The notes below the pieces were generated by a model. It did no database searches. It was not told the origin of the DNA and was given only the letters and a program-made list of their open reading frames with translations. This document shows positions 2,221 through 64,000 of a stretch of DNA of 64,000 nucleotides, piece by piece. Made by a program: the position numbers and the translations under genes. This DNA is from Thalia democratica (taxonomy: Eukaryota), in assembly GCA_965202585.1 (NCBI GenBank), contig OZ241833.1, forward strand, positions 19,716,001-19,780,000, read 5' to 3'. Position 1 is the stretch's first letter. Each line of letters starts with the position of its first letter.

Positions 2221-2472
2221 ATGAAGGTAATTTATGCAGGATTCTCAAAATGTGGAACAAAAACAATGAATTCTGCGTTAAACGAACTTGGTTTTAATGT
2301 TTACGACTTAGTTGAAAACTGCCAGTTTTTAGGGAAAGAATGGAATAAAATATTAACAGTTGGCGGAACAACAGAAGATTTCAGAAAAATGTTTGAAGAT
2401 GTTGATGCAGTAACTGATATTCCAGGATGTTTTTTTTGGGAGGAGATACATAAAGCATTTCCAGACTCAAAA
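2221..2472 (+). CDS. Sulfotransferase exon 1 (MKVIYAG...AFPDSK)
   Basis: ATG at 2221; donor AAA|GTGTTT at 2473 (weak consensus), phase 0. Confidence 0.85.
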
Positions 2473-3984
2473 GTGTTTTCATTATATAATCACTAAAACT
2501 TTATCTTGATATTTTTAAATTTTTTAGTTATAATACAGTAAAAGTTTACAGGCGATATTTAACTTTTTAAGTACGCGTTGATTTCTGCTGCTTTGAAACA
2601 AAGTGCAATAATAAGTATTGCTGTTTTATGTAAAGTTAAAAAAAAACTCAAAAAAACAACAACATTACACAATTGTACAGTAGTTTTTATCTAAAGTAAT
2701 CATTAATTTTAGGCAATATAAGAGTTACGCAGAGTAAGATAATATAGAATTAAGAACGTCATGCGTATTAGTTGTGTTTTTTATCAACATTTTATAACAA
2801 ACTTTTAAATTTAAATCGTCATGTTTTTAAATTTCGTTTCCAATACTTAAACTTTACAGCGTAGTACACAAAAATACATCTGTTCTAAAACTAAGATCTT
2901 CTACTAAGCAGTATTGTAGTAGAAGAAAAGTATTAAAAACTTTACACATGAACACGTTTTAAAAACAATTTGGATTTTTAAATTTTTATATACTAATACA
3001 AAAATTTTTATTAATTGAAATATTAATAAAAATATTTAGTCATATAAAAAACTTTTAATTTAAGGCAAGTTTAAGAAGAAATTAACACATTAATTTAGTT
3101 AAAAAAAAGAACCTGAAAGCTACAAAAAAAAGTTTGAATTTATTAGCTGTTTTTTACAGATAATTTTTAGCCAACGAGAGAGCGAAGATATCTGGTGGAA
3201 AAGTTTTGAAAAGCAGTTGAAATCTAACGATGTATTTGTTTTGAAACTTTTAGGTATTCTATCTCCGACGTTTATTCACTTAGACACGTTGGGAAGAAAA
3301 ATAAGTAAGTGTACCTAGAAGTTTTTAACTTATAAATAAATTTTACTCAAGTTTAAGAAAAACTAACAAAATGAAGTTAAAAATGTTAAATACGAAGAGA
3401 TCTATTAAATAACTAATTTTTGATAGTTTTTTGGTACAATATTCTAAACATTCAACAGCTAAACTAAAACTAAATTTTTGCTTATATCGGTTTAAACATG
3501 TACGACTGAAAAAATGTTTTTTGAAATAGTTTATTTTTTAGTTCAAACAGCTTTTGGTTTTAAGTTCTCCAATCCTTTGTTTGGTAGGCCTACGTATAAC
3601 GAAATGATGGCACGAAAGTCTTACAGAATGCACAACTCTTATGTTTTAAACGTTAGTAATCTTTGTCAAAGTTAGTGTTTGTAAAAACTTATTTATTGTT
3701 TTTAAAAATAAACACAACATACGCTAACTCTTTAGAACGCACCAAAAGATAAACTCCACATCGTAGATTTCACTAAAGGCTGGCAGCCATTATGCGAATT
3801 CTTGGAGGTTCCAGTGCCAGATAAGGAGTTTCCTTACAAAAACAAAGGGGCAAGCGGTACCAATGAAATGATAAACACCAATCCTGTTTTCATCAGAATG
3901 CAAAGAGAACTGATTTTTTCTTCGGCAACAATTGCTTGTTTATTTGGTTTTGCTGCTTATAAATTTGTTAACTTTTTAAAGTAA
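2221..3984 (+). CDS. Sulfotransferase-like gene (Sulfotransfer_4/P-loop type), 4 exons, 251 aa, with a hydrophobic C-terminal tail
   Basis: Exons 2221-2472, 3160-3304, 3542-3651 and 3736-3984 join through GT-AG introns (phases 0,1,0) into 756 nt with no internal stop. The N-terminal MKVIYAGFSKCGTKTM resembles the PAPS-binding loop. D.P..FFWEEI..AFPDSK, R.SEDIWWKSF and KGWQPLCEFLEVPVPDKEFPYKN match my recollection of this family (no HMM run). Confidence 0.87.
3160..3304 (+). CDS. Sulfotransferase exon 2 (IIFSQRESEDIWWKSF...LGRKI)
   Basis: Acceptor TTTTTACAG|, donor A|GTAAGT, open frame. Confidence 0.85.
3542..3651 (+). CDS. Sulfotransferase exon 3 (..QTAFGFKF...YRMHNSYVLN)
   Basis: Acceptor TTTTTAG| (an in-frame alternative CAG lies at 3548-3550); donor AAC|GTTAGT. 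Confidence 0.8.
3736..3984 (+). CDS. Sulfotransferase exon 4 (NAPKDKL...KFVNFLK*)
   Basis: 84-nt intron with GCTAAC branch-like motif and TTTAG| acceptor; in frame with track ORF 3802-3984; TAA at 3982-3984. Confidence 0.88.
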   Translation, partial: NAPKDKLHIVDFTKGWQPLCEFLEVPVPDKEFPYKNKGASGTNEMINTNPVFIRMQRELIFSSATIACLFGFAAYKFVNFLK

Positions 3985-4599
3985 AATTACTAAAAATTCA
4001 AGCTCATTTCAAATGAAGCTAACTTAAATTTTTAGTTTGTTACGTTTTAAAAACTGCTTAAAATGATTTTAATTCTAGTTTACAAAGTTTAAAAACCTTT
4101 AAGCAGATGATAGTTATCATAACAAAATAAAATAAAAATCCTTATCTCTTGCATTTTTTTTTTTTAAATTTACTATTTTTTGTTGAATATTTTTGTTTCA
4201 GTAGAACGTGTTTGAAAAGTTTTATTAAATAAAATCAATGATAATTTTTTTGGAACTTATATTTGCGTAAATTTAAACTGCGCCCATAACAAAAATCACT
4301 CATACAGTAATATCTTGTTAGGTATCTATACTTAGCCTATTATTTTTTTAGTCTTCTTAATTGTTAGAAAATATTACTCGACTATCTTTTAATAGTCTTT
4401 TAATAAAACTTTGGTCGTGGGCAAATTTCAAAAAATATAATTTTTGCAACCATAGTTGTAGTCTTACATTTTTACTGTTCATAACAGACCCGAAGTGTTT
4501 AAAATAAGTTTTGAATTTGTTAAGCTTTCTCTATATCTGTTTTTTAATGCTGTTTAATTTAAACTTAAGAATATCTAGCGTACGTTTTACAAATTTTTT

Positions 4600-4704
4600 T
4601 TCAATCTGCATTTGCATGTTCGCGAACCGCAGTTGTACCATTTTATGGTCTGCGTCCCATAAAAAATAGACACATGCTCACATGCCGCAGTTTACCTAAC
4701 CCTG
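4600..4704. mobile_element. Degenerate hAT/Charlie-like MITE end
   Basis: Ends GCCGCAGTTTACCTAACCCTG followed by GTTTAAAG (NTNTANAN-like target). Carries TGCGTCCCATAAAAA, similar to the reverse complement of TTTTTATGGGTCGCA in the 8505-8767 element. Partner end not found. Confidence 0.4.
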
Positions 4705-6003
4705 GTTTAAAGCTTTGAAAATAATATTTTAAATTATTTTTCAAAATTCAACAGCTTATGATTTTAGTTCGCTGATTTAACTTGTTAAAAAAATAAAACA
4801 GTCGTCAGTTAGATTATATTATTATTTTTTTTATTGTATTATTTTCTTTTTTAATCACTAAAACATGTAGTGCAACATTAATAATAAGTTTTCCTTAATT
4901 TTATATGTTAGCTAAAAATTCTTAAACTTAAGCTCGTTACTTAAATACAAAAACTACAAAAGTTATTAGCTTTAGTTTTACTGTTATAATGTTTAAAAAC
5001 GTTTTGTTCAAAAATGATCAACTCTTAGTATGTAAAAACTTTTTAAATCAGAAGCTATTATTAATCGAATTTAAATAAACTATTTTAAAATATTGACTCT
5101 TAATACAATTGAACAAAAAAAAGTCCATTGTTTTTTCGGTTAAGTTATAAATTTATTTCGTTTTGCAATATTTTAAAACTTATATGGTAACAATAGTAAG
5201 AAACTTAAATAAAAATTAATCAAGTCAAGGATATTTAACTAAATCAGAAATTTTTTCTAAACAAACATGATAGAATTTGTTAAATAAATTATAAAATTTT
5301 GCTACTGTACTATTTTATTTACTTAAATTAAAAAATAATAAACATACTAGTTTAGCTTTCATTGAGATTTTTATATCATTTCAAATACTAAACACTCATA
5401 ATTTTTTATATATTTTAGTAGTTAAGGCCTTTTTTCGGACAAAATTAAGTCAGAATAATATGTTATTTATTAAAATATTAAAACAGACTTTAAATTGGAT
5501 TTATGTTTGAATAAAAAAATTTGTTATAAAAGTTTACTTAATTGTGGTTAAGTAAATATCGTATATAAGTATTATAAAAAGTCTTTTCTATAAAAGTTCA
5601 AAAGTTTTTAAATAGTCTTGGTCGATTAATTACCTTTTGTATTCTTAATCAACAACCAAAGTTTAAACAACTAATAAGTTTGAATCAGCGGTTAGAAATT
5701 TAAAAAATGCAAAAATGTATCTATTATATAACCTAATCAGAAAACTTTTATTTCTTCCTGAATGATCCCACTAGCCATCTTTAAGAATCTCTAACTTAAT
5801 TTTCTAGAATTTTATACTCATACTTGTGTAGTTTATAGGTTATAAATGTTCGGTTTGTTGAACACTATAGGCTTATTTAAAAATGAAAAAAGTGATGAAT
5901 ATAATTTATCTGATAATTTCAGATTTAATTGGTAAGTTGTTCTTTTGATAATTTAAAAAGTAAACTTTACCTTGTATCAAGATTTTAGCTTTACTATATA
6001 CAG

Positions 6004-6301
6004 CAGGGTTTCCCAAAGTGAGCCAAGTGGCCCTCTTGGGAGCCATTACAAATGTTCAGGGGGCCACGAGCAGCAAAGGGGCCAAAGGCGGGGCCATGAG
6101 CAGTAAAGAAGCTACAGAGCTACAGGGGAGCCATGAAGTCATAATTTGAAATTTACACTAGATACTCTAGAGTTGACGATGAAGAGCAAAAAACGAGGTC
6201 TTAGTTGTTTTTAAAGGTAGTTTGAGTAATATTGTTGAAGGGGGCCATAGACTTTTTAATTTCTTCAAAGGGGGCCACTTGAATTTTTTTTGGAAACCCT
6301 G
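6004..6301. mobile_element. hAT-type MITE (298 bp)
   Basis: TIRs CAGGGTTTCCCAAA / TTTGGAAACCCTG; 8-bp TSD ATATACAG / ATATACAA (7/8); multiple internal GGGGCCA subterminal motifs. Confidence 0.87.
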
Positions 6302-8504
6302 ATATACAAACTTAAAGGTTTTGTTTTAGTTACCACAAAATTTGATGTAATAACTAAGTTTGAACCTTGATAAAAGTAAGATAGTTTTCGATAATAGTTT
6401 TTTAACATTGGTTGTAATAGTAGCTAAATTTTTATGAATTCATATTACTATTCATTTTAACTATTAACTTCCTTATGGCTAAGTACGTACCATTCACATA
6501 TGCATTTCTTCTCGAGTACGTATTTTTGAACCAATAGCTTTGATTTCAAAATTAAACTTACATGTACTTCTTAGGTACGTTATACGTTTACATCAGAATT
6601 TAAACTCTTATAATTACAACTTCGACTGTAAATATTTCAAAAAAATAAAGAGGCTACATTTCAAAAAGTAATATACCCTTTAAAAAATCAAAAAATGCTT
6701 TTCAAGATTTAAAATCAGAAAATGTACTTTTATTAAATAGATATTTTATAATTACTAAAATTTACTATATTTTAGTAGGTTTTTAAACTTATATAATCAA
6801 ATATAAAAAGTTATATAAGGTTTTAAAAGTATAAAAATCTTAATTGGGGTGTTAATAACAAAATAATATTTTTTTGTTTTTATTAATATTTGTAAAAAAT
6901 ATAATTAACAACTCCTCAGAATTAACATTTTTTTTTTAATTTGAGAAGTTTCAATTTAGATGTCAAAATTTGAACTGTCGTTCACCCCTTAAGTACGCAC
7001 AGGCTGTGTTCAGAGATCTTACAAAAAGATCATTTCTAAAGGAAGATTACTGTAATTTAGAATTTAACAAGTTTACTAAATTATGATTTTTACAACAAAA
7101 GTTAAAACTATTATATCAAATTAAATGCTTGATCATTAAACAGTTGGACTCTAAACCTTTAAACTAAAATTCACTTTGTTGTTACTTTTACATATTAATC
7201 TGCAATTTTAACTATTTTGAATGACACAATTGATTTTTTGAAACCAAAGTAAACAAAATGCATTTCTTTTTCACAACCACCATTACGAGGACTTTCATAG
7301 GCGCAAATAAACAAATGGTCACAAACTTACAACTGGAACAAGGTTGGTCGAAGAAAATGCTCAGAGAACCATGCATGAGTACTTTTCGGATCCAGTAAAC
7401 AAGAGGCTGACCGATTATCTCGTTGAGAGAAACACTGAAGGTGCTTTTTTTTGACAATGAAAGCTGTTTCCGAAGAATCAAAGCAACAGTAACTACAATC
7501 TGAAATTTTGTACGTTCGAACCGCCCGAGTTTAATTGTTGATGATTTAAGAAATTACGCTTTTTTTATGAACGTAGCCGCGCAATTAAAGGATGTATAGT
7601 TTCATTGTCAAAGTATTGTTAAATTTATATACATTTAAATACATATATTTTATATATGTACCTTAATTTATTTATAGTTTCTTCACTCCACATACTTCTT
7701 TGTTTTATAGTATGAGACGCTATACGAACTTTAGATTATGTTAGTTGGTGCCAGTGGCAATGTTTAGTTATATAAGTAGTAATATATTTGAGTTCTGAAT
7801 CCTGAGGCTCTAAACATTTATTTTTACTTTATTAGTTTAATGTGTATGAAACAATCAACCTGCTATAATAGTTGGTTTACTGATAATATTGCTGTTAGAA
7901 AAACTGTTAGCTTTTCATATTGTTATTCTGAATAAAAATACATAAAGTTAAAATTTTGTCTACAATTTTTTATATTTTAAATTTAAACAAATAAGTTAAT
8001 CTTGTTATCATACTGAAGTTTATTTATAGTTTTAAAAGAACTTTTGATACTGCTTGCTAAGTTCTAGTTTTGTTTTAGATATCAATTTCTACTTGCCGAA
8101 AGCAGTCAATATTATTTAGATTTTAACTATGTCTATTTTCAAATGAAAGTAATTTACTGTTAATAAGCTCCCCTTATTTTTTTACTTAGTTTAGTATTAA
8201 CTTATTTATTTTTAATAAAAAAAAATTTCTCTGTATTTTATTTGTTACTTTTTATAATGTATGTACTTAGTTTAAGTTATAACTAGTCAGTTTGAACTTC
8301 AATTGTTGGTAGATAAAACCATCATCAAAAAATCTTATATAATCGTATACAACTCATGAAACTTTTAGCTTGTTGTTAGGATAACTTCAATAACTTTTTT
8401 ATTTGTTTGTGAACAAATTTTCATGATGTTCAACATCTGCTTTCTCTCATTTTTAAAAATTTTAATGATTACATTAGGATCTACTACCGGTTCTATATCA
8501 TACC

Positions 8505-52000: not shown

Positions 52001-53639
52001 TTTTTGTAATATATTTTTTAAACAAGTCGAAAAAGGAAATTTCGTTTGAAACTTATCCTCAAACAGTTAGTCTATTTTTCATTTTAGCTTTTTCAAGTTA
52101 AGTAAAAAATTTTTGTTTATCTTTACTTAATTTATATTTTACTAGGATTTGAAAAAATTAGTTTAAAAGTTACACAATGTAGTTAAAAATTTTTTGTAAT
52201 GCTTAATACTTTTTCTTGTCTTAAACAAGATTGAAACATTTTGAGTAAGCCTTTTTTTCTCGTTTAACTTATTTTACGGGTCTTAGATATTAGCAGTGTT
52301 TTTATATTTTGATTAGCCAATTTTCGCAAAGTTCTAGTATTGCTTTATAAAACCTTTTTCTATTAAACTATGTGATTTGTATTAGTTTTCAAACTTTTAG
52401 AAATATAAGTTGCTAGTATGTTTCTTAAAAGAGGTTAAAACGAAACAAGCTAGTTAAATATAACAATAACAACAATTTGCAAACACCTGTTTTATTGAAC
52501 TTGACTTAGTATTTAAAAACTATCATGTAAAACTCAATAAAACTATGTTATAAGCTTAAAACAGATAAATGTACGACAGTTAAGTAAAGCAAATACTTTT
52601 TATATTGTTTTAAGCACTTTTATTTATAAAACATTAGATTATTATCATTAGAAACTCGTAGCAAAAACGAATCATCAAAGAACGTTTTGTTTTGTTAGTA
52701 GCGTTTACTACTAAATTAGGTGAAAAGTATTGTCTTTTATTTAAAATTTTTTATACTTAAATGTTTCCATTCTATTTTACAAAGAATTGTAGTACTTTCA
52801 ATTATATTTATAACATAAGGAATCCGCCAAGGTTACCTACTAATCCAGAAACGCCAGATGTTACAATGGATATCTAGATACTTAGTTTAATAGTTTTTAA
52901 ACTTAAAAAAAACTTTCTATGCAATTGTTGGATAATAATTAATTGTTTTTTGCCATAAAAAAAGAAGGTATTATGTGAAAATAAGCTATAAGACATCATT
53001 TTGATTAGTATTTTTTTAATGAATTTTTAAATACTACTGCTACTGAGAGGTGTACAGCATAACAAGTAGCAAATGTTTTAAATTGATTAAAACCGTTTTT
53101 AAGATAAGAAACTATTTTTGGATTATGTAGAGCGGTCCTCCTTTGGCTATTGTTAGAGACGGAAAAAACTGTTCAACTTTTCAAAACATGGTTGCAATGT
53201 GACAGTGTTTCAATTTTGCTATTATGAGTTGTACAACTTTCAAAAAATATGTAACTAATCATTTGAAAAATCAAAATAATTTAGAAAAGCAGTTTGATAG
53301 TGTATTCTAATGCAGGAGTAGAACACTTTGTTAAAATATTTTATCTTTATATAAGCTTTAACGTCAAATAAATTTTAAGCCAGAGTGTAAAAAAATACCT
53401 TAGGTTTACAACAACTTATTTTATCTAAAAGCTAATTAATTTTATATAAAACTTTGTCAATTATCTTAAACTTTTTTTTTTCAAATACATGGCGGTGATA
53501 TTTGAAAGATATTTAGATCTAATAATAGTATCATGAGGCACGTTTAAAAAAGATATAAAGTATATGTAAAATATAAGTGAAATCTAACAAACTCGAAGTT
53601 GCTCAATAAAAGCGGACTAACTTATCTTAAAACCATTGT

Positions 53640-54660
53640 ATAAATGCTGTAATTAACAGTATAAAACTATAGTTTCAGAAAAAGATTAATAACTACTTTT
53701 GATCGAATTTTTAAACATTATTAATTTTGATACTCAATAAAAACAAATATGACATTAAGAATGGACTTGATACAGTTTTTTTTAATTATTAATTTACTTG
53801 AAAAATTATTTATAACTTAATTCTAGCATTCTAACATAAACACATGTGCATCATACTAGATTGAATACAAAATAATTTTGATGTTGATTGAAATTTTTAG
53901 TGTTTCAATTGCTAATCACTGATCCATTACATGAAAATGTTATGCAATTGTTTTTTTTCAAAAATTTATGCAATTCTTTTAGTAACACTTATTATAAATA
54001 AATCTAGATTAGCTGATGAAATACTATACATCTTGTAGCAAAAAATTAAAAAAAAATTTGCTTATATATTAAAGATCATTCTTTAATAGACATGAGTTTA
54101 TGAAAAAAAAAAAGTAAACAACAATCTGCCCATATGACATAATATGACACATATGGCATAAATGCTGTAATTAACAGTATAAAACTATAGTTTCAGAAAA
54201 AGATTAATAACTACTTTTGATCGAATTTTTAAACATTATTAATTTTGATACTCAATAAAAACAAATATGACATTAAGAATGGACTTGATACAGTTTTTTT
54301 TAATTATTAATTTACTTAAAAAAATTATTTTATAACTTAATTCTAGCATTCTAACATAAACACATGTGCATCATACTAGATTGAATACAAAATAATTTTG
54401 ATGTTGATTGAAATTTTTAGTGTTTCAATTGCTAATCACTGATCCATTACATGAAAATGTTATGCAATTGTTTTTTTTCAAAAATTTATGCAATTCTTTT
54501 AGTAACACTTATTATAAATAAATCTAGATTAGCTGATGAAATACTATACATCTTGTAGCAAAAAATTAAAAAAAATTTGCTTATATATTAAAGATCATTC
54601 TTTAATAGACATGAGTTTATGAAAAAAAAAAAAGTAAACAACAATCTGCCCATATGACAT
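53640..54660. repeat. Near-perfect direct tandem duplication (53640-54140 and 54158-54660)
   Basis: The copies differ by one substitution and four 1-nt homopolymer indels; 17-nt junction insert at 54141-54157. Confidence 0.97.
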
Positions 54661-55838
54661 GAACAACTTTTAATGATATGTATATGATAAAAAGAACTTT
54701 TTGCGCATTTTAAAACAATATAATTTTGTCTTAAATGTCTTCAAAATGTGAGATAAATGCTTCATATAGATATATATTAATGTGTAATATTTTTACTTCA
54801 TATACAGTATTCTACCACATAACTCCACCTAGTTTATATCTTAAGTTCAATATTTAGTATAAAAGTTTTACTTTTTTAAATGGTAATTTAAACTAAAATT
54901 AATTTAATTTTTACGTTTTGAAACTATTTGTACTGATACTTTCATACTTAAACTTTGATTAATAAAAGTATATAGCATTTTTTTAAGTCCTAACATTGTG
55001 TCTTATTCATCAAAACTGTTCTTTTTATTTGTAAGTTTGTACAAACTAAATCCGTATCAAAAAACATAATAGACAAGCTAAATGAACATCAGCTAAATAC
55101 ATAAGTTTTAGTCACTTTTCATCGTATCTGCCGTATACCCTCGCATTTTTTACCTGGGTTCAGCATGAGAAGTTACGCGGGAGACTACTGTAATTGCGAT
55201 CATTTCCTTTTTTTTCAATACTTTATATATTTAAAAAAGTCAAAACAGTACAAATAAAAAACAAGTTTAATATTTTCAAGATTTTTTTCTTTAAGTTAAA
55301 AACTTTTACTACTTGTAAGTACTAAGAATGACATAAAAAAGGTAGCTATAGAATATACTAATGGTGTCTTAAAACTTGCATTGAAATATAAATAAATGGG
55401 CGAGTAAAAGGCGTAATAAACACAAATAAATTGCTCAATTTAAGTAACTAAAAGAAAAAAAAAAACTTGATGAAATGTATGTGTGATAAACGTTAAAACG
55501 TGTACTACTAAATAAAACAAAAGCAGCAGTATAAGCCCTGCTACAGCTGTGCAAAACACAATCAAATCAATCTTGTCTTCGAACGTTGAATAGATCATCA
55601 TATAACAAATTGCTTTAACTTTAATTCAAAGAATCTATGAATAATTGTTTTACATGATTTTTTTTTAGTTTTGCTGCTTCTAAAATACAGTGAATCTTTT
55701 TATATTATTTGATTAATCTTTAACAAACATAATACAGAGTTTGCCAAACTGTTGATGCAGTTTTCCGCAGCAGATTTCAAAGTTACAAATTAAATAAATA
55801 GTTCAAATAGTTAAATACTATAAATAAAAAACTAATAA

Positions 55839-55976
55839 TTAGAAGTCCCTGTTCGCCTGCCTTCCCTCGTCCTCAATGTTCTTCCTCTCGTCGTCAGCAG
55901 CTTTCTCCGCTTCGTTCGGATCCCACTTGTCATCGTCCTCTTCTTCCCCCGCATCTTCATCCTCTCCATCGTATAT
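55839..55976 (-). CDS. Acidic/coiled-coil gene terminal coding exon
   Basis: TTTTCAACAG| acceptor; 45 codons plus TAA. Confidence 0.83.
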   Translation of the reverse strand: MYDGEDEDAGEEEDDDKWDPNEAEKAADDERKNIEDEGRQANRDF

Positions 55977-58094
55977 CTGTTGAAAATTTTGTTGTTTTAT
56001 AAAATTTTATACGACAAACTGTTAAATTTATGTCGTAATAACTCGAGGATTATTTTTGTTGACTTGGAATAAAATACTGTTTTTAAATCATGTTTACTAT
56101 CCATTTACTATTTTTTTTGTAGTTTCGTAATTAAATATACTTATTTTTCTATATTTCTACTGTCTCTAACTTAAATATACTCTTATCTTCTTCATCGTAT
56201 ATCTTCAAAAAAAATTATATTGAATAAAATACTTCATGACAAACTGTTATACTCAAGTTTTATGTTTTGCTCTAAGTAGACATAATTTATAAATCATCTT
56301 GGCAGCTAATAGTTCTTCATATTTTTGTAGCTTTATGTTTCTTATAGTTAATATTTACTAGAAAATTAATAAGTAATTTAACTTCAATTAATATTTCATT
56401 CATTTACAAACTCAACTTTAGAAGTAGTTATTGAATTTCTTAAGGACTTGAATTAAAAGAATTAGACCAGCGACTATTACCTCTCGGGCCAAATTCCTTT
56501 GTTTTAGGGGAAAAATTTTCATTATTACAAGCTATGTAAATAAATGTTTATTAATTGTCTTTTTAAATTTTAAGTTAGTATTTTAATGTTATTCTTTTTA
56601 AGTTAAGTAAACTCTGTAAATTTAACAATTTTTTATATAGAACAAGCGTAAAGTTCAAAAAGTTTAGTTTTTTCTTCAAAACTTTACACTATTTTGTATA
56701 TTGCGGGTAAATTTGGTAATTACCTTTCAAAAATGGGTAAAACATGAATAAAAGGTTAAGAACCGCTGTATTAGATCTATTACTATCTAGAACTCAATAA
56801 TATATATTACTTTAATGAAAAGTTTTAAGTTTGCTTAATTATCACCCAAAAAAACAATTACACGTCAAGTTAATTTTTAAATAGCTTAGACAAACTTACA
56901 AAAGCTACTTTTAAAATTTAAAAAGTAATAACAAGGTATATATACTTATAAACTACTAAAGAATAGCTGCATCAAAAGCTCACATATTGTACTTGCTCCT
57001 GTTCGTTTTCTTCAGTTCCGTCTGCCGCGTAATTTTCCTCCAAGTTTTCATCTGACTTAGGCGGGGCGTTGATGAAACTTTCTCCTACTTCCCGGTCACC
57101 GACCGCCGCGACAGGAGGCTCGTTCAACTGAACAACTTCCTTGTCTGTTGAAATCGTTGAAAACAAATTTATGATCTTATAAATTCTTTGTAATAAGCTA
57201 ACTTCGAGTACTTTATGTTTAGAGCTCTTTGTTTCAACGAAAACATATAAAAGGATTAAATATAAATTTTAACCTTCATTTTCAACATCTTTCACTTCGT
57301 TTTCATCTAAATTCATGTCTGCATCTTCAGCTGTTTCTTCACCTGATTTAAATAAAAAAAGGTAAAAAAAAACATAACTTTTGATTTATTTATTTTGATT
57401 GATATGATTTATTTTTATATTTACAAAGAATTAAAATTTATTTCATATACCAAACTACAATTTATTTATACATCATTCAGTAAAAGTTGCTAAACGTTTT
57501 AAACTTTTATTAGCTATATATAAAAAATTATGATTAAAGTAAATAAAATATATCAAAAAATTGGCAGCTTTTGTTTCACAATATTATTTTAATTGTTTAA
57601 CAAATTTTCAAATAAGGGATATTTAAAAGGTAGCCAAAGGTTTTTTGAATACTTTTTCAGGTTTTCAGAATTTCTTTGAGTTTTTTGAGGTTAAAATTAA
57701 GCTTAAAAATGTCTTAGAAGCATAAAAATATTAAGAAAATACTGTAATGGTACTACCAAAGTGTTTAAAATAAACATAAATTTATACTTTTTTAACATTC
57801 CAAGTTTTTCCAGAATACTTTTGCCTAAACTGTCGAAATAATAGTTTTTTCTAGTTTTTTTGGCCCTGTACCTACAAATTGAACATTTTAAATTTATCAA
57901 ATTCAATAAAAACAATGTAACACAATATTTAAAAAGAATATAAAAACTTTGAAAACTACACGCAAACCTTCTTTTTGAAGCTGCTGCTTTTGTTGAAGTT
58001 CCAACAAGTTTGCCTGTTGGTTGTCAGCCAACTGCTGCTGGGCTTCCTGCAACTTTTGTATTTCTTCAATCACTTGGTCCTCCTTCACTACTTC
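55839..58094 (-). CDS. 3' part of a gene for a Gln-rich coiled-coil protein with an acidic C-terminus (weakly reminiscent of GOLM1/GOLM2-type Golgi proteins); 5' exons not found in the window
   Basis: Exons 58094-57968, 57342-57274, 57144-56984 and 55976-55839 splice in frame (phases 0/1/1/0): EVVKEDQVIEEIQKLQEAQQQ...DMNLDENEVKD...EQVQY-IYDGEDEDAGEEEDDDKWDPNE...ANRDF*. The family assignment rests on composition and recalled motifs only. Confidence 0.8.
56149..56202 (-). other. Duplicated copy of the terminal-exon start (alternative last exon or pseudo-exon) IYDEEDKSIFKLETVEI*
   Basis: ATATACGATGAAGAAGAT parallels ATATACGATGGAGAGGAT of the 55976 exon; upstream intron sequence is also similar; acceptor TTTTTTTTGAAG|. 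Confidence 0.45.
56468..56768. mobile_element. hAT/Charlie-like MITE (~301 bp)
   Basis: Right end GGTTAAGAACCGCTG (Charlie-type CAGCGGTTCT..), degenerate left end CAGCGACTATTACC; flanks AATTAGAC / TATTAGAT (6/8). Confidence 0.6.
56984..57144 (-). CDS. Acidic/coiled-coil gene internal exon
   Basis: TTCAACAG| acceptor, TAT|GTGAGC donor; inside track ORF 56972-57166. Confidence 0.83.
57274..57342 (-). CDS. Acidic/coiled-coil gene internal exon (69 nt)
   Basis: AAATCAG| acceptor, AAG|GTTAAA donor; EETAEDADMNLDENEVKDVENE. Confidence 0.8.
57626..57868. mobile_element. Degenerate copy of the CAGGGTTGCCA MITE family
   Basis: Ends AAAGGTAGCCA / TGGCCCTG; internal TTTTGCCTAAACTGTCGAAAT matches TTTTGCCTAAATTGTCAAATT of 58277-58607; flanks TATTTA / TACCTA. 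Confidence 0.45.
57968..58094 (-). CDS. Acidic/coiled-coil gene internal exon (Q-rich)
   Basis: ATACAG| acceptor, AAG|GTTTGC donor; inside track ORF 57903-58088. Confidence 0.82.
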
Positions 58095-58276
58095 CTGTAT
58101 TCAGTATGATAAATTGTGCTATATATCGTAAACTAAATAACTAAGTTTGCGAGAATCCAAAGTAATAACTAAATATAAAATGTTAGATCTTTGATATATT
58201 TTAATAGTTTTTTTGTAAACCTCTTTTAAGAAATACCAAAAATTGAATGTATTATTTTAATATAAGTTGATATTAC

Positions 58277-58607
58277 CAGGGTTACCACTCTTTTTATCAA
58301 AATTTTTTCCAGGTTTTTCAAAGTACACATTTTTGGGTCTATTTTTAGTTAAAAGTTAAGTTTAAGGTAAGAAACTGTGTTAAATAGTATAAAAACATTT
58401 AAAATATACTTTTAGCTACTTTTAATATGTTTTTTTAATAAAAAATTTTTGATGATGACAAAAACTTTTATCTATATGATAGATTTTTCGAGTCAAATCG
58501 AAATTTTACTACTGAACATGTGAAAATTTCTCAAATTCCAGGTTTTTTTTTGCCTAAATTGTCAAATTCCAGGTTTTTCTAGGTTTCCAGGTAAAGTGGC
58601 AACCCTG
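58277..58607. mobile_element. MITE with CAGGGTTRCCAC TIRs and an apparent 6-bp TSD (331 bp)
   Basis: TATTAC|CAGGGTTACCAC ... GTGGCAACCCTG|TATTAC; repeated subterminal CCAGGTTTTT motifs. Confidence 0.85.
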
Positions 58608-58640
58608 TATTACAATATATTTTTACGTTAAGCTTTAAAG

Positions 58641-59553
58641 CAGGGTTTCCCAAACTTTTTTTCTAATGGCCCCCTTCGAGGAAATTTAAAAGGCCATGGC
58701 CCCCTACAATATGGCTTCACAAATTTATATTGTGCACATTTTTTATTCGTTTAAAAACGAATGGGTGCATTCTAATAAGTTCAGCGTAATACCACTGTTA
58801 CTTGAAAGACTATATTTTTGAATTTTTAAGGTGACTCATTCAAATTTTTAATTAGCTTCTAGCGCTGCCATTACATCTGGTTGTAATAAATAATTTTCAT
58901 AGTAACAAAAATGTTGTTTAAATAAAAGCCTCTCTATCACAAAAAAAACTTGGAATAAATACAATTTATTAAATTGAAATGTCTTTGTAAATGTCAATTG
59001 CAACAAATTAAGTAATTTAATTCGTACCTTAAATATCAAATTTAGAAAATGAAACGTTAATCAAAAACATTTTGATATTTTTAATGGTTGTAACATAAAA
59101 ATTGCAAAGAAATTAATATTCTATGGAATGAAAAAAAAGAACTCAAAAATACTTTGTCCAATGACCTAGTATTTGAAAAAACCTTTCGGTAATCTCGTTG
59201 TACACTACTTGGATACAGTTTAACGTCTTGTCCAGGACAATGAAATGATTAGTTTATTTAACAAACATAAAACATAATCGAGTTATAAAATTAGATGACA
59301 CAATTTTCTGGATAGGCAAACTGCTTGTTAGGGTGTTGACTGCTGGATTGTCTAGTTACGTTGCTATAGACTGGTTGATGTGGCTAGTTCGGTTGCTAAA
59401 GACTGTTGAATTTGTACTTAGTTTATAAATCTAGCTATTTTAAATACCTAATTAAGATAACTTAACAAGAAAAAAACAAGTTCAGTCTACTATTCTACTT
59501 AAACTTATCTTAAGTCAGTCTGAGTTAGAAAAAAATCCTGAGTTATCCTAAGC
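58641..59553. repeat. Left arm of the 913-bp inverted repeat
   Basis: Base-by-base comparison with the reverse complement of 61339-62251 gives 4 substitutions and no indels. Confidence 0.98.
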
Positions 59554-59673
59554 CAAAGGGGGGCCCATGTCTAGAAAAGGGGCCATAAGGGAGCCTTTTC
59601 AATTTTTTGCCGTCTTTGAAAATTACGTAAATTTTTGCAACAGCAATTTTAGAATTTTAGTTTTTGGCCCTGG
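59554..59673. mobile_element. Truncated hAT-like MITE end abutting the left arm
   Basis: GGGGCCC/GGGGCCA motifs, ending TTTGGCCCTG; its left part is absent where the arm joins. Confidence 0.4.
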
Positions 59674-61257
59674 GTTTAGATATAAAATCCACTTTGTGTA
59701 AGTATGTTCTAGAAATAGCTTTAGTGCTTAGGTCAGATAACTCAATGTAAAGTTCAATCTATTGCCAATTTTATTTACAGTATATGTTTACATTACAGTT
59801 TCAACCAATTAAATTGAGAAATTTACAGTCTAAAGATGTTGCTTAAAACAAAGTTAAACATCAGCTGCTCAGTTTTTATAAGGTAATGTGAATTATTAGA
59901 TTATTAACTTATCTTATATAGAGAGATAGTTATTTGTGTATCAAAAATGCAACTCCTACTTGATTCAATATGCCAACCAGGCAATCTCATCAAATGTATT
60001 TCAAGTATGTTTTCATATATTTATACTCATGTTTTAGCAAACAATATTTTATTAAAACTTATTGTATTTAAAGGTTATTCTGAATTTACAATATGATGAA
60101 TCAGCAAAAAAAAAAAGTTGTTTTTCATGTTATTTTTTATTTTATCTATTAAAGCTTTATTCTTTGATTAATTTCTAATATGTATGGGTAAAGTGGGATA
60201 GGGATAAGGGTATAAAAAAAATAAAGCTTTAAAAAAAATGTATCTATTCTGTAAATTTGCAAATCAGACTGACCTTTAAGTATACTATTCATTAAATTTT
60301 AAATTGTAAGTTCTTAGAGTTTTTAATAACTAACATTAAATATAACTTTTCAAAATTCAATAATGTGAACAACTTTTTTTTAAATGTAGATTCTTACTTA
60401 AATTAATATAGAAGTTTTTTTTATGGTTGCCCCTATAAGTTATAAAATTGTAACTTTCTAGCATATTGCTAATAAAACTATTATATTTTTATAAATAAAT
60501 GTTGTGTACTATGAGTTTAACTTAGTTTAACTTTTATTTTAAACCAAACCACATTTAAAAAATAATTTTTAGTTACCTTAGTAATTAAGTAGTATGTAAC
60601 ATTCTTAAGTACCACTCTTATTTAATAATTCCAATAAACTCTGACTAACTCTTTTTTTGGTTAGTATGAACCATTTGTTATTCTTACATATGTTGCCTTG
60701 AGCTTATTTTTTGTACAATTTAAACTTAAGATAATTAAGACTTAAAAAAAAAGTCAAAAGTTGTTAACAAAATTAATGGTGTGAGGTTCATTACCAAAAT
60801 GTTTTTCTCCACACTAATCCATTGACCTTTGTTGTAAGTGTTCACATTTTTCTTTCTTACTAATCTTCATCTATTTTTTAAATCCTTACAATAAACTTTG
60901 TATATACTTGTTAGTAATGATAAAAGTGCTAATAACCTATTTTATTTATTACCAGTTATAAATGAGATTTTTTTCAAATCATTTTAAGTATATATGAAAT
61001 AATATAATAAAAAAAACTTAATAATATTTGAAAAGGTTTAAATTTTTTCCCACTGAAACCTGGTAAAAAAATATAAAAGTTTATTTTCACCTTTTTAATT
61101 ATTTAATTAATCTCTTTACTTTACAGTAAATTTGAGCAATATTTTAAAGTTTGGTCAAATAAGTATATACATTTATTTTAAACAAGTCATATGGTGAAAT
61201 TGAATGTTTTTTAATTACTTCTCAGTTTACTTAACATTACACTTAACATTTTACATA

Positions 61258-61338
61258 CAGGATTGCCAAATAATTGGTACACTCAGAATAAATCAGGACA
61301 TTTTGAAACTTTTGAAAATCTAAGAATGACTCAGGACA
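61258..61338. mobile_element. MITE end (CAGGATTGCCAAA, TCAGGA repeats) that continues into the right arm
   Basis: TIR-like start at 61258; TCAGGA repeats on both sides of the arm boundary at 61339. Confidence 0.4.
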
Positions 61339-62251
61339 GCTTAGGATAACTCAGGATTTTTTTCTAACTCAGACTGACTTAAGATAAGTTTAAGTAGAAT
61401 AATAGACTGAACTTGTTTTTTTCTTGTTAAGTTATCTTAATTAGGTATTTAAAATAGCTAGATTTATAAACTAAGTACAAATTCAACAGTCTTTAGCAAC
61501 CGAACTAGCCACATCAACCAGTCTATAGCAACGTAACTAGACAATCCAGCAGTCAACACCCTAACAAGCAGTTTGCCTATCCAGAAAATTGTGTCATCTA
61601 ATTTTATAACTCGATTATGTTTTATGTTTGTTAAATAAACTAATCATTTCATTGTCCTGGACAAGACGTTAAACTGTATCCAAGTAGTGTACAACGAGAT
61701 TACCGAAAGGTTTTTTCAAATACTAGGTCATTGGACAAAGTATTTTTGAGTTCTTTTTTTTCATTCCATAGAATATTAATTTCTTTGCAATTTTTATGTT
61801 ACAACCATTAAAAATATCAAAATGTTTTTGATTAACGTTTCATTTTCTAAATTTGATATTTAAGGTACGAATTAAATTACTTAATTTGTTGCAATTGACA
61901 TTTACAAAGACATTTCCATTTAATAAATTGTATTTATTCCAAGTTTTTTTTGTGATAGAGAGGCTTTTATTTAAACAACATTTTTGTTACTATGAAAATT
62001 ATTTATTACAACCAGATGTAATGGCAGCGCTAGAAGCTAATTAAAAATTTGAATGAGTCACCTTAAAAATTCAAAAATATAGTCTTTCAAGTAACAGTGG
62101 TATTACGCTGAACTTATTAGAATGCACCCATTCGTTTTTAAACGAATAAAAAATGTGCACAATATAAATTTGTGAAGCCATATTGTAGGGGGGCATGGCC
62201 TTTTAAATTTCCTCGAAAGGGGCCATTAGAAAAAAAGTTTGGGAAACCCTG
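61339..62251. repeat. Right arm of the 913-bp inverted repeat
   Basis: Mirror of 58641-59553 (paired coordinates sum to 120892); mirror ORFs 58848-59039(-) and 61853-62044(+). Confidence 0.98.
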
Positions 62252-62706
62252 TTTTAAAACAATTAAAAAACTTTACAGTATCAGCTTATAAATGTAATAA
62301 AAAACAGATTAGCATTCCTCCAGGTTTTTTCTCAGTTTATCATCATAACTTTCTTCTTACAACAGCTAGTATAGGTATTTTTTACTTGTTTTTTAAAACT
62401 AAATTTATTTTATAGATGTTTTATTACTAAAATTTATACTTAAGTGTACACAAAAACATTTAAAATTACATATTAGTAAGAAAAAAGGTTTATTTTATTT
62501 GATTTTTACACATTTTGATTTTTTAGAAATTGTTTTAGCATTCTAAACTAATTCCTATGCACACAAATGTACAAAGATGCTCATATTTAAATCGGCATAC
62601 TGACAATTCCCACTCAAAAATATTTTTAACTTTCTTTATTTATTTCTTTTTTTTCTAATATTTTTGTTTCGTTTATATTTATTATTAATTTATGTTTTAC
62701 TATCAC

Positions 62707-63710: not shown

Positions 63711-64000
63711 TTATGTAAGTGCATTGCATCTTTGCTTTTAAAACGCCTTCACCTATTATTGTGCATTGGAACTTAACCTAGAATCTTTTCTAAAAAATCA
63801 AAGTCAGTAAAAACACCTCTAATAAGAACTCTCAGATGAGCAATATTTGTTGTACCTGTTCTCTTATATTAACAGATTGATTAAAGTTCTAATTTGATTG
63901 ATGCTGCTTTATAAACTTCAGAGATTTAATAAACACGACTAAATGTTGTCATTGAAGAAAAGAACAAAAATATTTTACTACCGCCAACATAAATTCTTAA

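Follow-up and report, generated by a model that had tools for sequence, protein, structure and literature searches.

The window analysed here is the whole stretch of 64,000 nucleotides from Thalia democratica. It contains a unit with two long inverted arms, neighboured by copies of the repeats M1 and M2 and by an exon-like open reading frame (Table 1). When the arms (913 bp each) were compared with one another, mismatches were found at four positions (58674, 58699, 58975, and 59490), and the terminus CAGGGTTTCCCAAAC was identical at both outer ends of the unit. Both features had been noted in an earlier sequence-only reading of this DNA and proved to be real. Chance similarity of the arms is impossible at 909 matches in 913 positions. 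A search with M1 gave 4,618 first-look candidates, and 38 of the 39 other full matches ended at query positions 266-286 of 301 (58605-58625), mostly near 58609.

Table 1. Features of the unit and its surroundings, with positions counted in the window.
Feature	Position	Strand	Description
Exon-like ORF	57957-58095	-	Gln/Glu-rich peptide; acceptor-like ACAG/G upstream, donor-like AAG/GTTTG downstream, no in-frame ATG; predicted from sequence only
M1	58340-58607		Copy of a high-copy, unrelated MITE; ends at 58607, 33 bp away from the unit, with an inverted terminus of CAGGGTTGCCAC type
Left flanking 8-mer	58633-58640		CTTTAAAG; fits the family target preference; found once in contig C869, without an adjoining element
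Left arm	58641-59553	+	A end 58641-59477 (837 bp), filler 59478 (1 nt), and 59479-59553 (first 75 bp of region B)
Fold-back junction	59552-59553		2-bp GC microhomology; position 75 of B (inverted copy) joined to position 1,862 of B; unique in the genome
Spacer	59554-61338	-	The family's own region B; stops 77 bp before the B-end terminus
Inner-segment remnant	61258-61413	-	156 bp, ending in CAGGATTGCCA; the right arm takes in its first 75 bp
Right arm	61339-62251	-	Matches the left arm in content; the private A-B deletion junction lies at 61413-61415
Right flanking 8-mer	62252-62259		TTTTAAAA; fits the family target preference; lies inside M2
M2	62252-62552		Copy of a high-copy repeat, cut exactly at the arm terminus

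Read on the minus strand, the unit begins with the 837-bp A end of a repeat family, passes over an internal deletion of ~4 kb into 1,862 bp of region B, and ends in a second, inverted copy of the 913 bp with which it starts. The internal deletion took out the transposase region, and the inverted copy occupies the place of the missing last 77 bp and of the second (B) terminus. A 1-nt filler is found at the A-B deletion joint, and 2 bp of microhomology at the fold-back joint. The arms had previously been described as composite, with an inner part of ~200 bp from a second element. Their two-part build was confirmed, as was the CAGGATTGCCA end at 61258, which is the inner 11-bp inverted terminus of the family's inner segment and is kept on the right only; however, the inner parts derived from this segment (59479-59553 and 61339-61413) measure 75 bp each. 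The 1.8-kb spacer, taken before for unrelated DNA, runs on from the inner part of the arm in more than 35 other family copies at 92-96% identity (over positions 1-1785). Likewise, what had been taken for a third, truncated MITE at 59554 is the opposite subterminal region of the family itself and breaks off 77 bp ahead of the terminus. The whole interior is family sequence, and the suggestion that the unit carries host DNA was abandoned.

Full-length copies of this family are 5.4-7.7 kb long and have 15-bp terminal inverted repeats (TIRs) with different subterminal regions at the two ends. In every full-length copy examined, A and B were parts of one element, and perfect duplications of an 8-bp target site (TSDs) were found around five out of five. 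The family inserts preferentially at nTnTAnAn (all 27 flanks have T in position 4 and A in position 5), and its targets agree with the nnnTAnnn consensus of hAT Buster elements (PMC3517528). One full-length copy (L051) has an ORF with 97% identity to a 592-aa protein (P0001; PF14291, PF27073, PF27046), and an intact 592-aa transposase of the family is present in public data. Comparison with a local Pfam copy gave no significant match for the transposase ORFs, and neither a PDB sequence search nor phage tblastn was of use for naming. Among 1,162 relatives, the named ones are SCAND3-, ZBED8-, or ZBED5-like, and the transposase was therefore classed as Buster-type. On these sequence features the repeat family as a whole is assignable to the Buster group of the hAT superfamily. 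The outer 837 bp of the arm is a high-copy repeat, and its terminal 36 bp were matched at 513 places in the assembly. The arms hold non-coding terminal sequence only, which in full-length copies lies downstream of the transposase ORF.

Further comparison revealed how the unit departs from this family. Family elements possess one A and one B end, while both ends of the unit are A. Beyond arm position 841 only the two arms of this locus match each other, and all but one of the other matches end by position 837. Across the 802-Mb assembly, the A-B deletion junction is present in the two arms alone and the fold-back junction occurs a single time; a genome-wide check for other copies of the unit, proposed in the sequence-only reading, found none, both junctions being private to the locus. 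Because neither junction is found elsewhere, the unit does not come from a long-TIR family, and the earlier view of a recent inverted duplication of one transposon end was upheld. That the unit is an ordinary family member with natural TIRs of ~0.9 kb would be in keeping with the structure itself and with nothing more; given the short TIRs and differing subterminal regions of full-length copies, and arm matches that end elsewhere at ~837, this idea has next to no chance of being correct. The unit belongs to a high-copy Buster-type hAT family, of which it is a rearranged, non-autonomous copy private to this locus.

Palindromes are a known class of assembly artefact, and a chimeric fold-back read or a mis-join could produce one. 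Relative to 28 family copies, each arm carries 2 derived changes, and 5 private substitutions are common to both arms. From these counts it follows that the arm differences represent real divergence after duplication rather than sequencing noise. Moreover, the structure is not a perfect palindrome, as it contains a 1.8-kb loop; neither of its flanks is the inverted counterpart of the other; at the joint 2 bp overlap, with no repeat for an assembler to mis-join through; and an independent contig, C869, confirms the left flank to the base. An artefact is accordingly regarded as highly improbable.

Two different host sequences abut the identical termini of the unit, each with base precision. An 8-bp TSD had been assumed around the unit; the flanking 8-mers CTTTAAAG and TTTTAAAA match at only six of eight positions and so are not a TSD. 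On the right, M2 extends at least 31 nt further left, with conserved sequence, in more than 100 other copies. On the left, C869 agrees with the flank as far as the precise terminus; 229 unique bp missing from chromosome C9 come next, and C869 rejoins C9 at window-equivalent 64910, which is 6,269 bp past the left-flank end at 58640. The C9-specific block of 6.27 kb would thereby have its right breakpoint at ~64909, while C9 was read as far as window position 64000; a pattern search for C9 sequence at this breakpoint matched C869 only. This contig may be a paralogue rather than an allele (~96% identity). It also lacks the repeats (2.66 kb) that follow the unit on its right side; hence the haplotypes differ by more than the unit's event. 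The empty site that the earlier reading anticipated was therefore found in part: C869 has the left 8-mer once without an element, but it runs on into the 229 bp absent from C9. A simple insertion is recognized by an identical 8-bp duplication and contiguous empty-site flanks, and the unit shows neither. This comparison points to the loss of at least 229 bp of host DNA. It can be stated with high confidence that the unit is a private rearranged family copy, without host DNA, that did not arise as a simple insertion.

With respect to its origin, the best overall explanation is probably a family copy that was rearranged by way of paired inverted copies and a central deletion. The starting point would be two copies of one deletion derivative (~2.8 kb each), closely spaced and oppositely oriented so that their B ends faced each other. 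Such a pair could arise by local hAT re-insertion or by sister-chromatid or hybrid-element transposition, with one copy having landed at CTTTAAAG in unique, putatively intronic DNA and the other within M2 at TTTTAAAA. The resulting long, near-perfect palindrome would then have been stabilised by an asymmetric central deletion, closed by end-joining at the 2-bp microhomology. Lost in this deletion would have been the greater part of one copy, 77 bp from the other, and the intervening host DNA, comprising at least the 229 bp kept in C869 and the left part of M2. Whether paired copies and a central deletion were the specific route is about evenly balanced. Since no second copy of the A-B deletion derivative was found in the assembly, we infer its independent existence, and an allele representing the intermediate, with both inverted copies complete, was not encountered.

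At other loci (e.g., L048), family copies occur as close or nested inverted pairs, and closely linked hAT copies are familiar from 'double Ds'. Inverted Ds pairs provoke deletions; in rice OsRLG5, closely linked inverse Ds pairs from local transposition were found to provoke deletions, inversions, and duplications (PMC3239180). Those pairs were seen as they arose, with both elements intact, whereas at the present locus the product left by the deletion is all that is visible, and its precursor is reconstructed. Two replication-based routes were also considered and rejected. A replication template switch alone would have copied the flank too, and the left terminus is exact and lies at a target-like site. 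Sister-fork fusion alone would give mutually inverted flanks, which the unit does not have.

Alternatively, the fold-back could have formed first and then integrated. Here a broken or excised deletion derivative would have primed on itself, either through snap-back or template switching in gap repair or through fused aborted re-replication forks, as proposed for maize Ac. The molecule with two identical termini would have been inserted by transposase, and a later flanking deletion or one-ended event would have erased the TSD and the adjoining host DNA. The exact termini and the 2-bp microhomology at the fold-back junction agree with this sequence of events, as does the structure itself, which equals that of Ac composite insertions with two unequal inverted same-end fragments and a non-homologous joint. 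However, an extra adjacent deletion is required to explain the unequal 8-mers, the truncated M2, and the absence of the 229 bp; the TSDs of Ac composite insertions were perfect; and the unit has no second copy. Formation of the fold-back before integration is for these reasons thought unlikely, and the rearrangement of paired inverted copies is preferred.

The sequence-only reading had gone further and suggested a newborn composite or foldback element, carrying host DNA, that an autonomous hAT could mobilise. The unit does have two complete termini with subterminal motifs, and it belongs to a very successful family, as seen from the number of matches to the terminal 36-mer, for which an intact transposase is on public record. 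Set against this are the interior made of family sequence, the lack of a TSD or of any other copy, and termini that lie in non-contiguous host sequences. Furthermore, an uninterrupted full-length transposase frame was found in none of the 74 scored matches in the assembly, the best having one stop, and natural family elements use two slightly different ends. Mobilisation of the unit as a new element is therefore very unlikely. The unit is an ordinary by-product of faulty transposition, and annotation should mask it as part of the family and treat it neither as a new element nor as host DNA that was captured.

Comparable structures are known from maize. The Ac 'killer' composites p1-ww-id1 and p1-ww-id4 consist of two unequal inverted same-end fragments (Wang et al. 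2020, 10.1101/2020.01.07.897926). In the unit, the corresponding fragments are 913 bp and 2,700 bp (837 + 1 + 1,862) and meet at 2 bp of microhomology. Membership of the hAT superfamily, inverted unequal same-end fragments, a non-homologous joint, and an origin in aberrant transposition are thus common to both, as is a position in or near a host gene (here putative) whose transcription could give dsRNA. For the maize composites, dsRNA and siRNA were shown (10.1101/2020.01.07.897926). The maize insertions, however, have perfect 8-bp TSDs and large inverted duplications of host DNA (10.1101/2020.01.07.897926), whereas the 8-mers of the unit differ and its flanks are unrelated. Aberrant or alternative hAT transposition, as invoked earlier for this locus, is a plausible origin that matches the maize Ac composites (10.1101/2020.01.07.897926), but not their perfect TSD. 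The systems also differ in that the unit is a Buster-type element in an animal and the composites are Ac in a plant. In addition, both internal junctions of the unit are base-resolved, a precision out of reach of the maize work on its composites.

A second maize structure, Mu killer (Muk), belongs to the Mutator superfamily and includes part of the transposase gene. In the summary given by the maize study, it is a natural inverted duplication of the terminal part of a DNA transposon (10.1101/2020.01.07.897926). The unit resembles Muk as an inverted duplication of one terminal part and a potential source of hairpin RNA, but its arms are exclusively non-coding and it is a hAT rather than a Mutator element. 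Among hAT elements, Ds-like internally deleted non-autonomous derivatives come from abortive gap repair, and ordinary derivatives of this kind keep both natural ends and the TSD. With these the unit shares the ~4-kb internal deletion of the transposase and the 1-nt filler at the joint; unlike them, it has lost one natural end.

Earlier descriptions of the rearranged element were sought and none was found. In this non-model, AT-rich, 802-Mb genome, the unit is a footprint of aberrant hAT transposition that has been well preserved, and a second contig, C869 (possibly a paralogue), keeps an unoccupied left site. The base-resolved junctions and this left site show that animal Buster-type elements make same-end inverted composites of the class described for Ac.

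It is plausible that the unit lies within an intron of a minus-strand gene, with which the exon-like ORF at 57957-58095 is consistent. If the host gene were transcribed through the unit, a hairpin with a stem of 913 bp and a loop of 1.8 kb would form in the RNA. An Rfam search matched no family. The unit is most likely an inert structural variant, and it is considered rather improbable that an intronic 913-bp hairpin is diced into small RNAs helping to silence the family, or persists as heavily A-to-I-edited intronic dsRNA. Were the hairpin expressed and processed, it would be a natural small-RNA silencing trigger for a DNA transposon family in an animal, and its small RNAs would target the terminal region common to more than 500 Buster-type copies.

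Repeat detection returned one pair of inverted segments, 58634-59553 and 61339-62258, which are 99% complementary and separated by 1,785 nt, and alignment anchored on the termini defined arms of 913 bp each that differ at only four positions (58674, 58699, 58975, and 59490). Arm similarity ends sharply one base past 913 bp, and the outer ends of the unit, left and right alike, are CAGGGTTTCCCAAAC. The inverted repeat described in the sequence-only reading is thereby borne out. The window, C9:19716001-19780000 in the assembly, has 25% G+C and zero N; a chance origin of the pair was ruled out by its length and identity.

Copy searches and BLAST over the 802-Mb assembly placed the unit in a high-copy hAT family. 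Matches to the outer 837 bp of the arm (region A) were 94-98% identical among the best 40 of 2,176 candidates, which were scored; the arms themselves aside, all but one of these end by position 837, the exception reaching 841. The 36-nt terminus occurs 513 times assembly-wide when up to two mismatches are allowed. High copy number extends to the 1,785-bp 'spacer' (more than 35 full-length matches, 92-96% identity), which at those loci lies 2.6-4.9 kb from, and on the strand opposite to, an A copy. From BLAST comparison between the unit and six such loci, the family order is A, an internal region X, and the other-end region B. Full-length copies are 5.4-7.7 kb long with 15-bp TIRs that differ by one base between ends (…CCCAAAC and …CCCAAAG), and perfect 8-bp TSDs were found in five out of five. 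The target consensus is nTnTAnAn, positions 4 and 5 being T and A in 27/27 flanks, and this matches nnnTAnnn, the target signature of the Buster group (PMC3517528). X carries an opposite-strand ORF 97% identical to a 592-aa protein with PF14291, PF27073, and PF27046; the named members among its 1,162 relatives are SCAND3-, ZBED8- or ZBED5-like. Because the transposase reads towards A, the ends were labelled A and B, and A is the downstream end in conventional orientation. An intact 592-aa transposase (P0001) is present in public ENA-derived data, and is 97% identical to the best assembly copy, which lies in the L051 locus (G000:C10:24802296-24804071) and has a single TAA stop.

On the minus strand, the unit begins with A, a 1-nt filler, and B from its first base; the internal deletion at this junction corresponds to L051 positions 2429-6469 and includes the transposase. 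B extends for 1,862 bp, ending 77 bp before the family's B terminus, where a 2-bp GC overlap marks the join to a second, inverted stretch made up of A, the filler, and B's first 75 bp. Since the fold-back copies all three, the same A-B deletion junction is present in both arms. With 81-nt probes against the whole assembly, this junction was found in the two arms only and the fold-back junction once, and the unit does not represent a long-TIR family. The interior is wholly family sequence and host DNA is absent from it. The unrelated DNA proposed for the middle is therefore dismissed, and the supposed third MITE at 59554 proved to be the GGCCCC-rich subterminal region of the family's B end.

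Features of the unit and its surroundings (window positions)
Feature	Position	Strand	Basis or remark
Left arm	58641-59553		Anchored alignment
Right arm	61339-62251		Anchored alignment
Region A	58641-59477		Copy search
Region B	61413 down to 59552	minus	BLAST against six loci
GC overlap at fold-back	59552-59553		
Inner-segment remnants	61258-61413 and 59479-59553		Sequence comparison
M1 (MITE)	58340-58607		
M2 (repeat)	62252-62552		
C9-specific block	58641 to about 64909		Right breakpoint beyond window
Exon-like ORF	57957-58095	minus	Acceptor- and donor-like sites, no ATG; sequence only
Other coding-like ORF pieces	55832-55969, 56972-57166	minus	
Tandem duplication	53635-54632		

In full-length copies, an inner segment of ~4.2 kb (C10:24801443-24805624; L051:2444-6625) encloses the transposase ORF and is bounded by CAGGGTTGCCA, an 11-bp inverted terminus that occurs at 2444 and 6625 of L051. 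TSDs accompany the outer CAGGGTTTCCCAAAC ends and not the inner CAGGGTTGCCA ends, and no matching TSD surrounds the inner segment in L051. These 'full-length' copies look composite, with a CAGGGTTGCCA-bounded segment inside a CAGGGTTTCCCAAAC-ended outer element. The second element noticed earlier, with an end at 61258, is real: CAGGATTGCCA at this position is the right end of the family's own inner segment, of which the unit keeps 156 bp after the deletion, 75 bp of these within the arms. M1, an unrelated MITE with 4,618 candidates, shares the end motif CAGGGTTGCCAC with the inner segment.

The 8-mers adjoining the unit are unequal: the left one is CTTTAAAG, the right one TTTTAAAA, and each fits the family target preference. 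Unlike the unit, even older family copies retain perfect TSDs. The left flank consists of M1 followed by 33 bp. On the right, the repeat M2 begins at the first flanking base (2,182 candidates, 87-92% identity). Conserved sequence extends at least 31 nt left of the TTTTAAAA site in over 100 M2 copies elsewhere; here M2 ends exactly at the arm terminus, and its left part is absent from the opposite side of the unit. M2 is unclassified, has over 1,800 pattern matches across the genome, and carries in its interior the TTTTAAAA that served as a hAT target. An unplaced 35-kb contig, C869, aligns with window positions 58021-58640 (95.8% identity); the match takes in CTTTAAAG and runs to the base immediately preceding the terminus. 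C869 continues with 229 bp (C869:27523-27751; L057:624-852) that have no match elsewhere in the assembly, and rejoins from C9:19780910 onwards at 96%, equivalent to window position 64910, just outside the window. From these matches, C9 holds 6,269 bp where C869 holds 229 bp; the C9 stretch comprises the unit and 2.66 kb of the repeats M2 and M3. C869 looks like an alternative haplotype of the locus (about 96% identity). The unit is not a simple insertion: its two exact termini are joints of transposase type, each to a different host sequence, and the host DNA expected between the two target sites is missing.

Polarised against 28 family copies, the arms show two derived changes each and share five private substitutions; their closest sampled relatives are 97.6-98.7% identical. 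The arm-specific changes indicate that the arms diverged (0.44%) after duplication, and the shared changes and the relatives' identity place the duplication well after the lineage split from those relatives. The sequence-based suggestion that one end was recently duplicated in inverted orientation is upheld. Four features speak against an origin of the structure as an assembly artefact: the divergence pattern, the 1.8-kb loop, flanks that are unrelated to each other, and the 2-bp joint.

hAT elements typically re-insert locally, and long palindromes are unstable and commonly stabilized by central deletions. We give an even chance to an origin from paired inverted deletion-derivative copies followed by asymmetric central deletion. 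Two copies of one ~2.8-kb derivative would have lain close together in opposite orientation with B ends facing, the first at CTTTAAAG, the second within M2, produced by local re-insertion or by a single sister-chromatid/hybrid-element event re-inserting nearby. The deletion would then have taken the palindrome centre (the bulk of one copy, 77 bp from its partner, and the intervening host DNA), its ends joining at the 2-bp microhomology. In rice, inverted pairs of Ds elements in close linkage form and go on to trigger deletions as well as rearrangements of other kinds (PMC3239180). The family itself has inverted pairs, close together or nested, at other sites too, for example at L048 (C8:19805141-19809939), where a minus copy is truncated within the transposase region and a plus copy's terminus is 14 bp away. 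In the main alternative, a fold-back may have formed first, through snap-back, a template switch during gap repair, or fusion of aborted re-replication forks, then integrated and later lost its TSD by flanking deletion. Fork fusion is the model for maize Ac composite insertions (10.1101/2020.01.07.897926), which, like the unit, consist of two inverted fragments, unequal in length, from the same end. This order of events needs one step more, and we regard it as unlikely.

The view that the unit is a newborn mobilizable element does not hold, as no sign of its past movement was found and, among the 74 transposase matches scored in the assembly (a lower bound), not one keeps its frame uninterrupted from residue 1 to 592. 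The unit is a further example, resolved to the base, of a known class of aberrant hAT products. An intron probably extends upstream from the exon-like ORF over the unit, although no exon was found on its upstream side. If transcribed, the unit would certainly form a 913-bp stem. Rfam gave no family match. RNA evidence of hairpin processing would lift its otherwise modest interest. The three coding-like, G+C-richer ORF pieces, which are acidic, Gln-rich, and Arg-rich, resemble exons belonging to a gene on the minus strand. The tandem duplication has a period of about 520 bp, its two copies being 96-98% identical.
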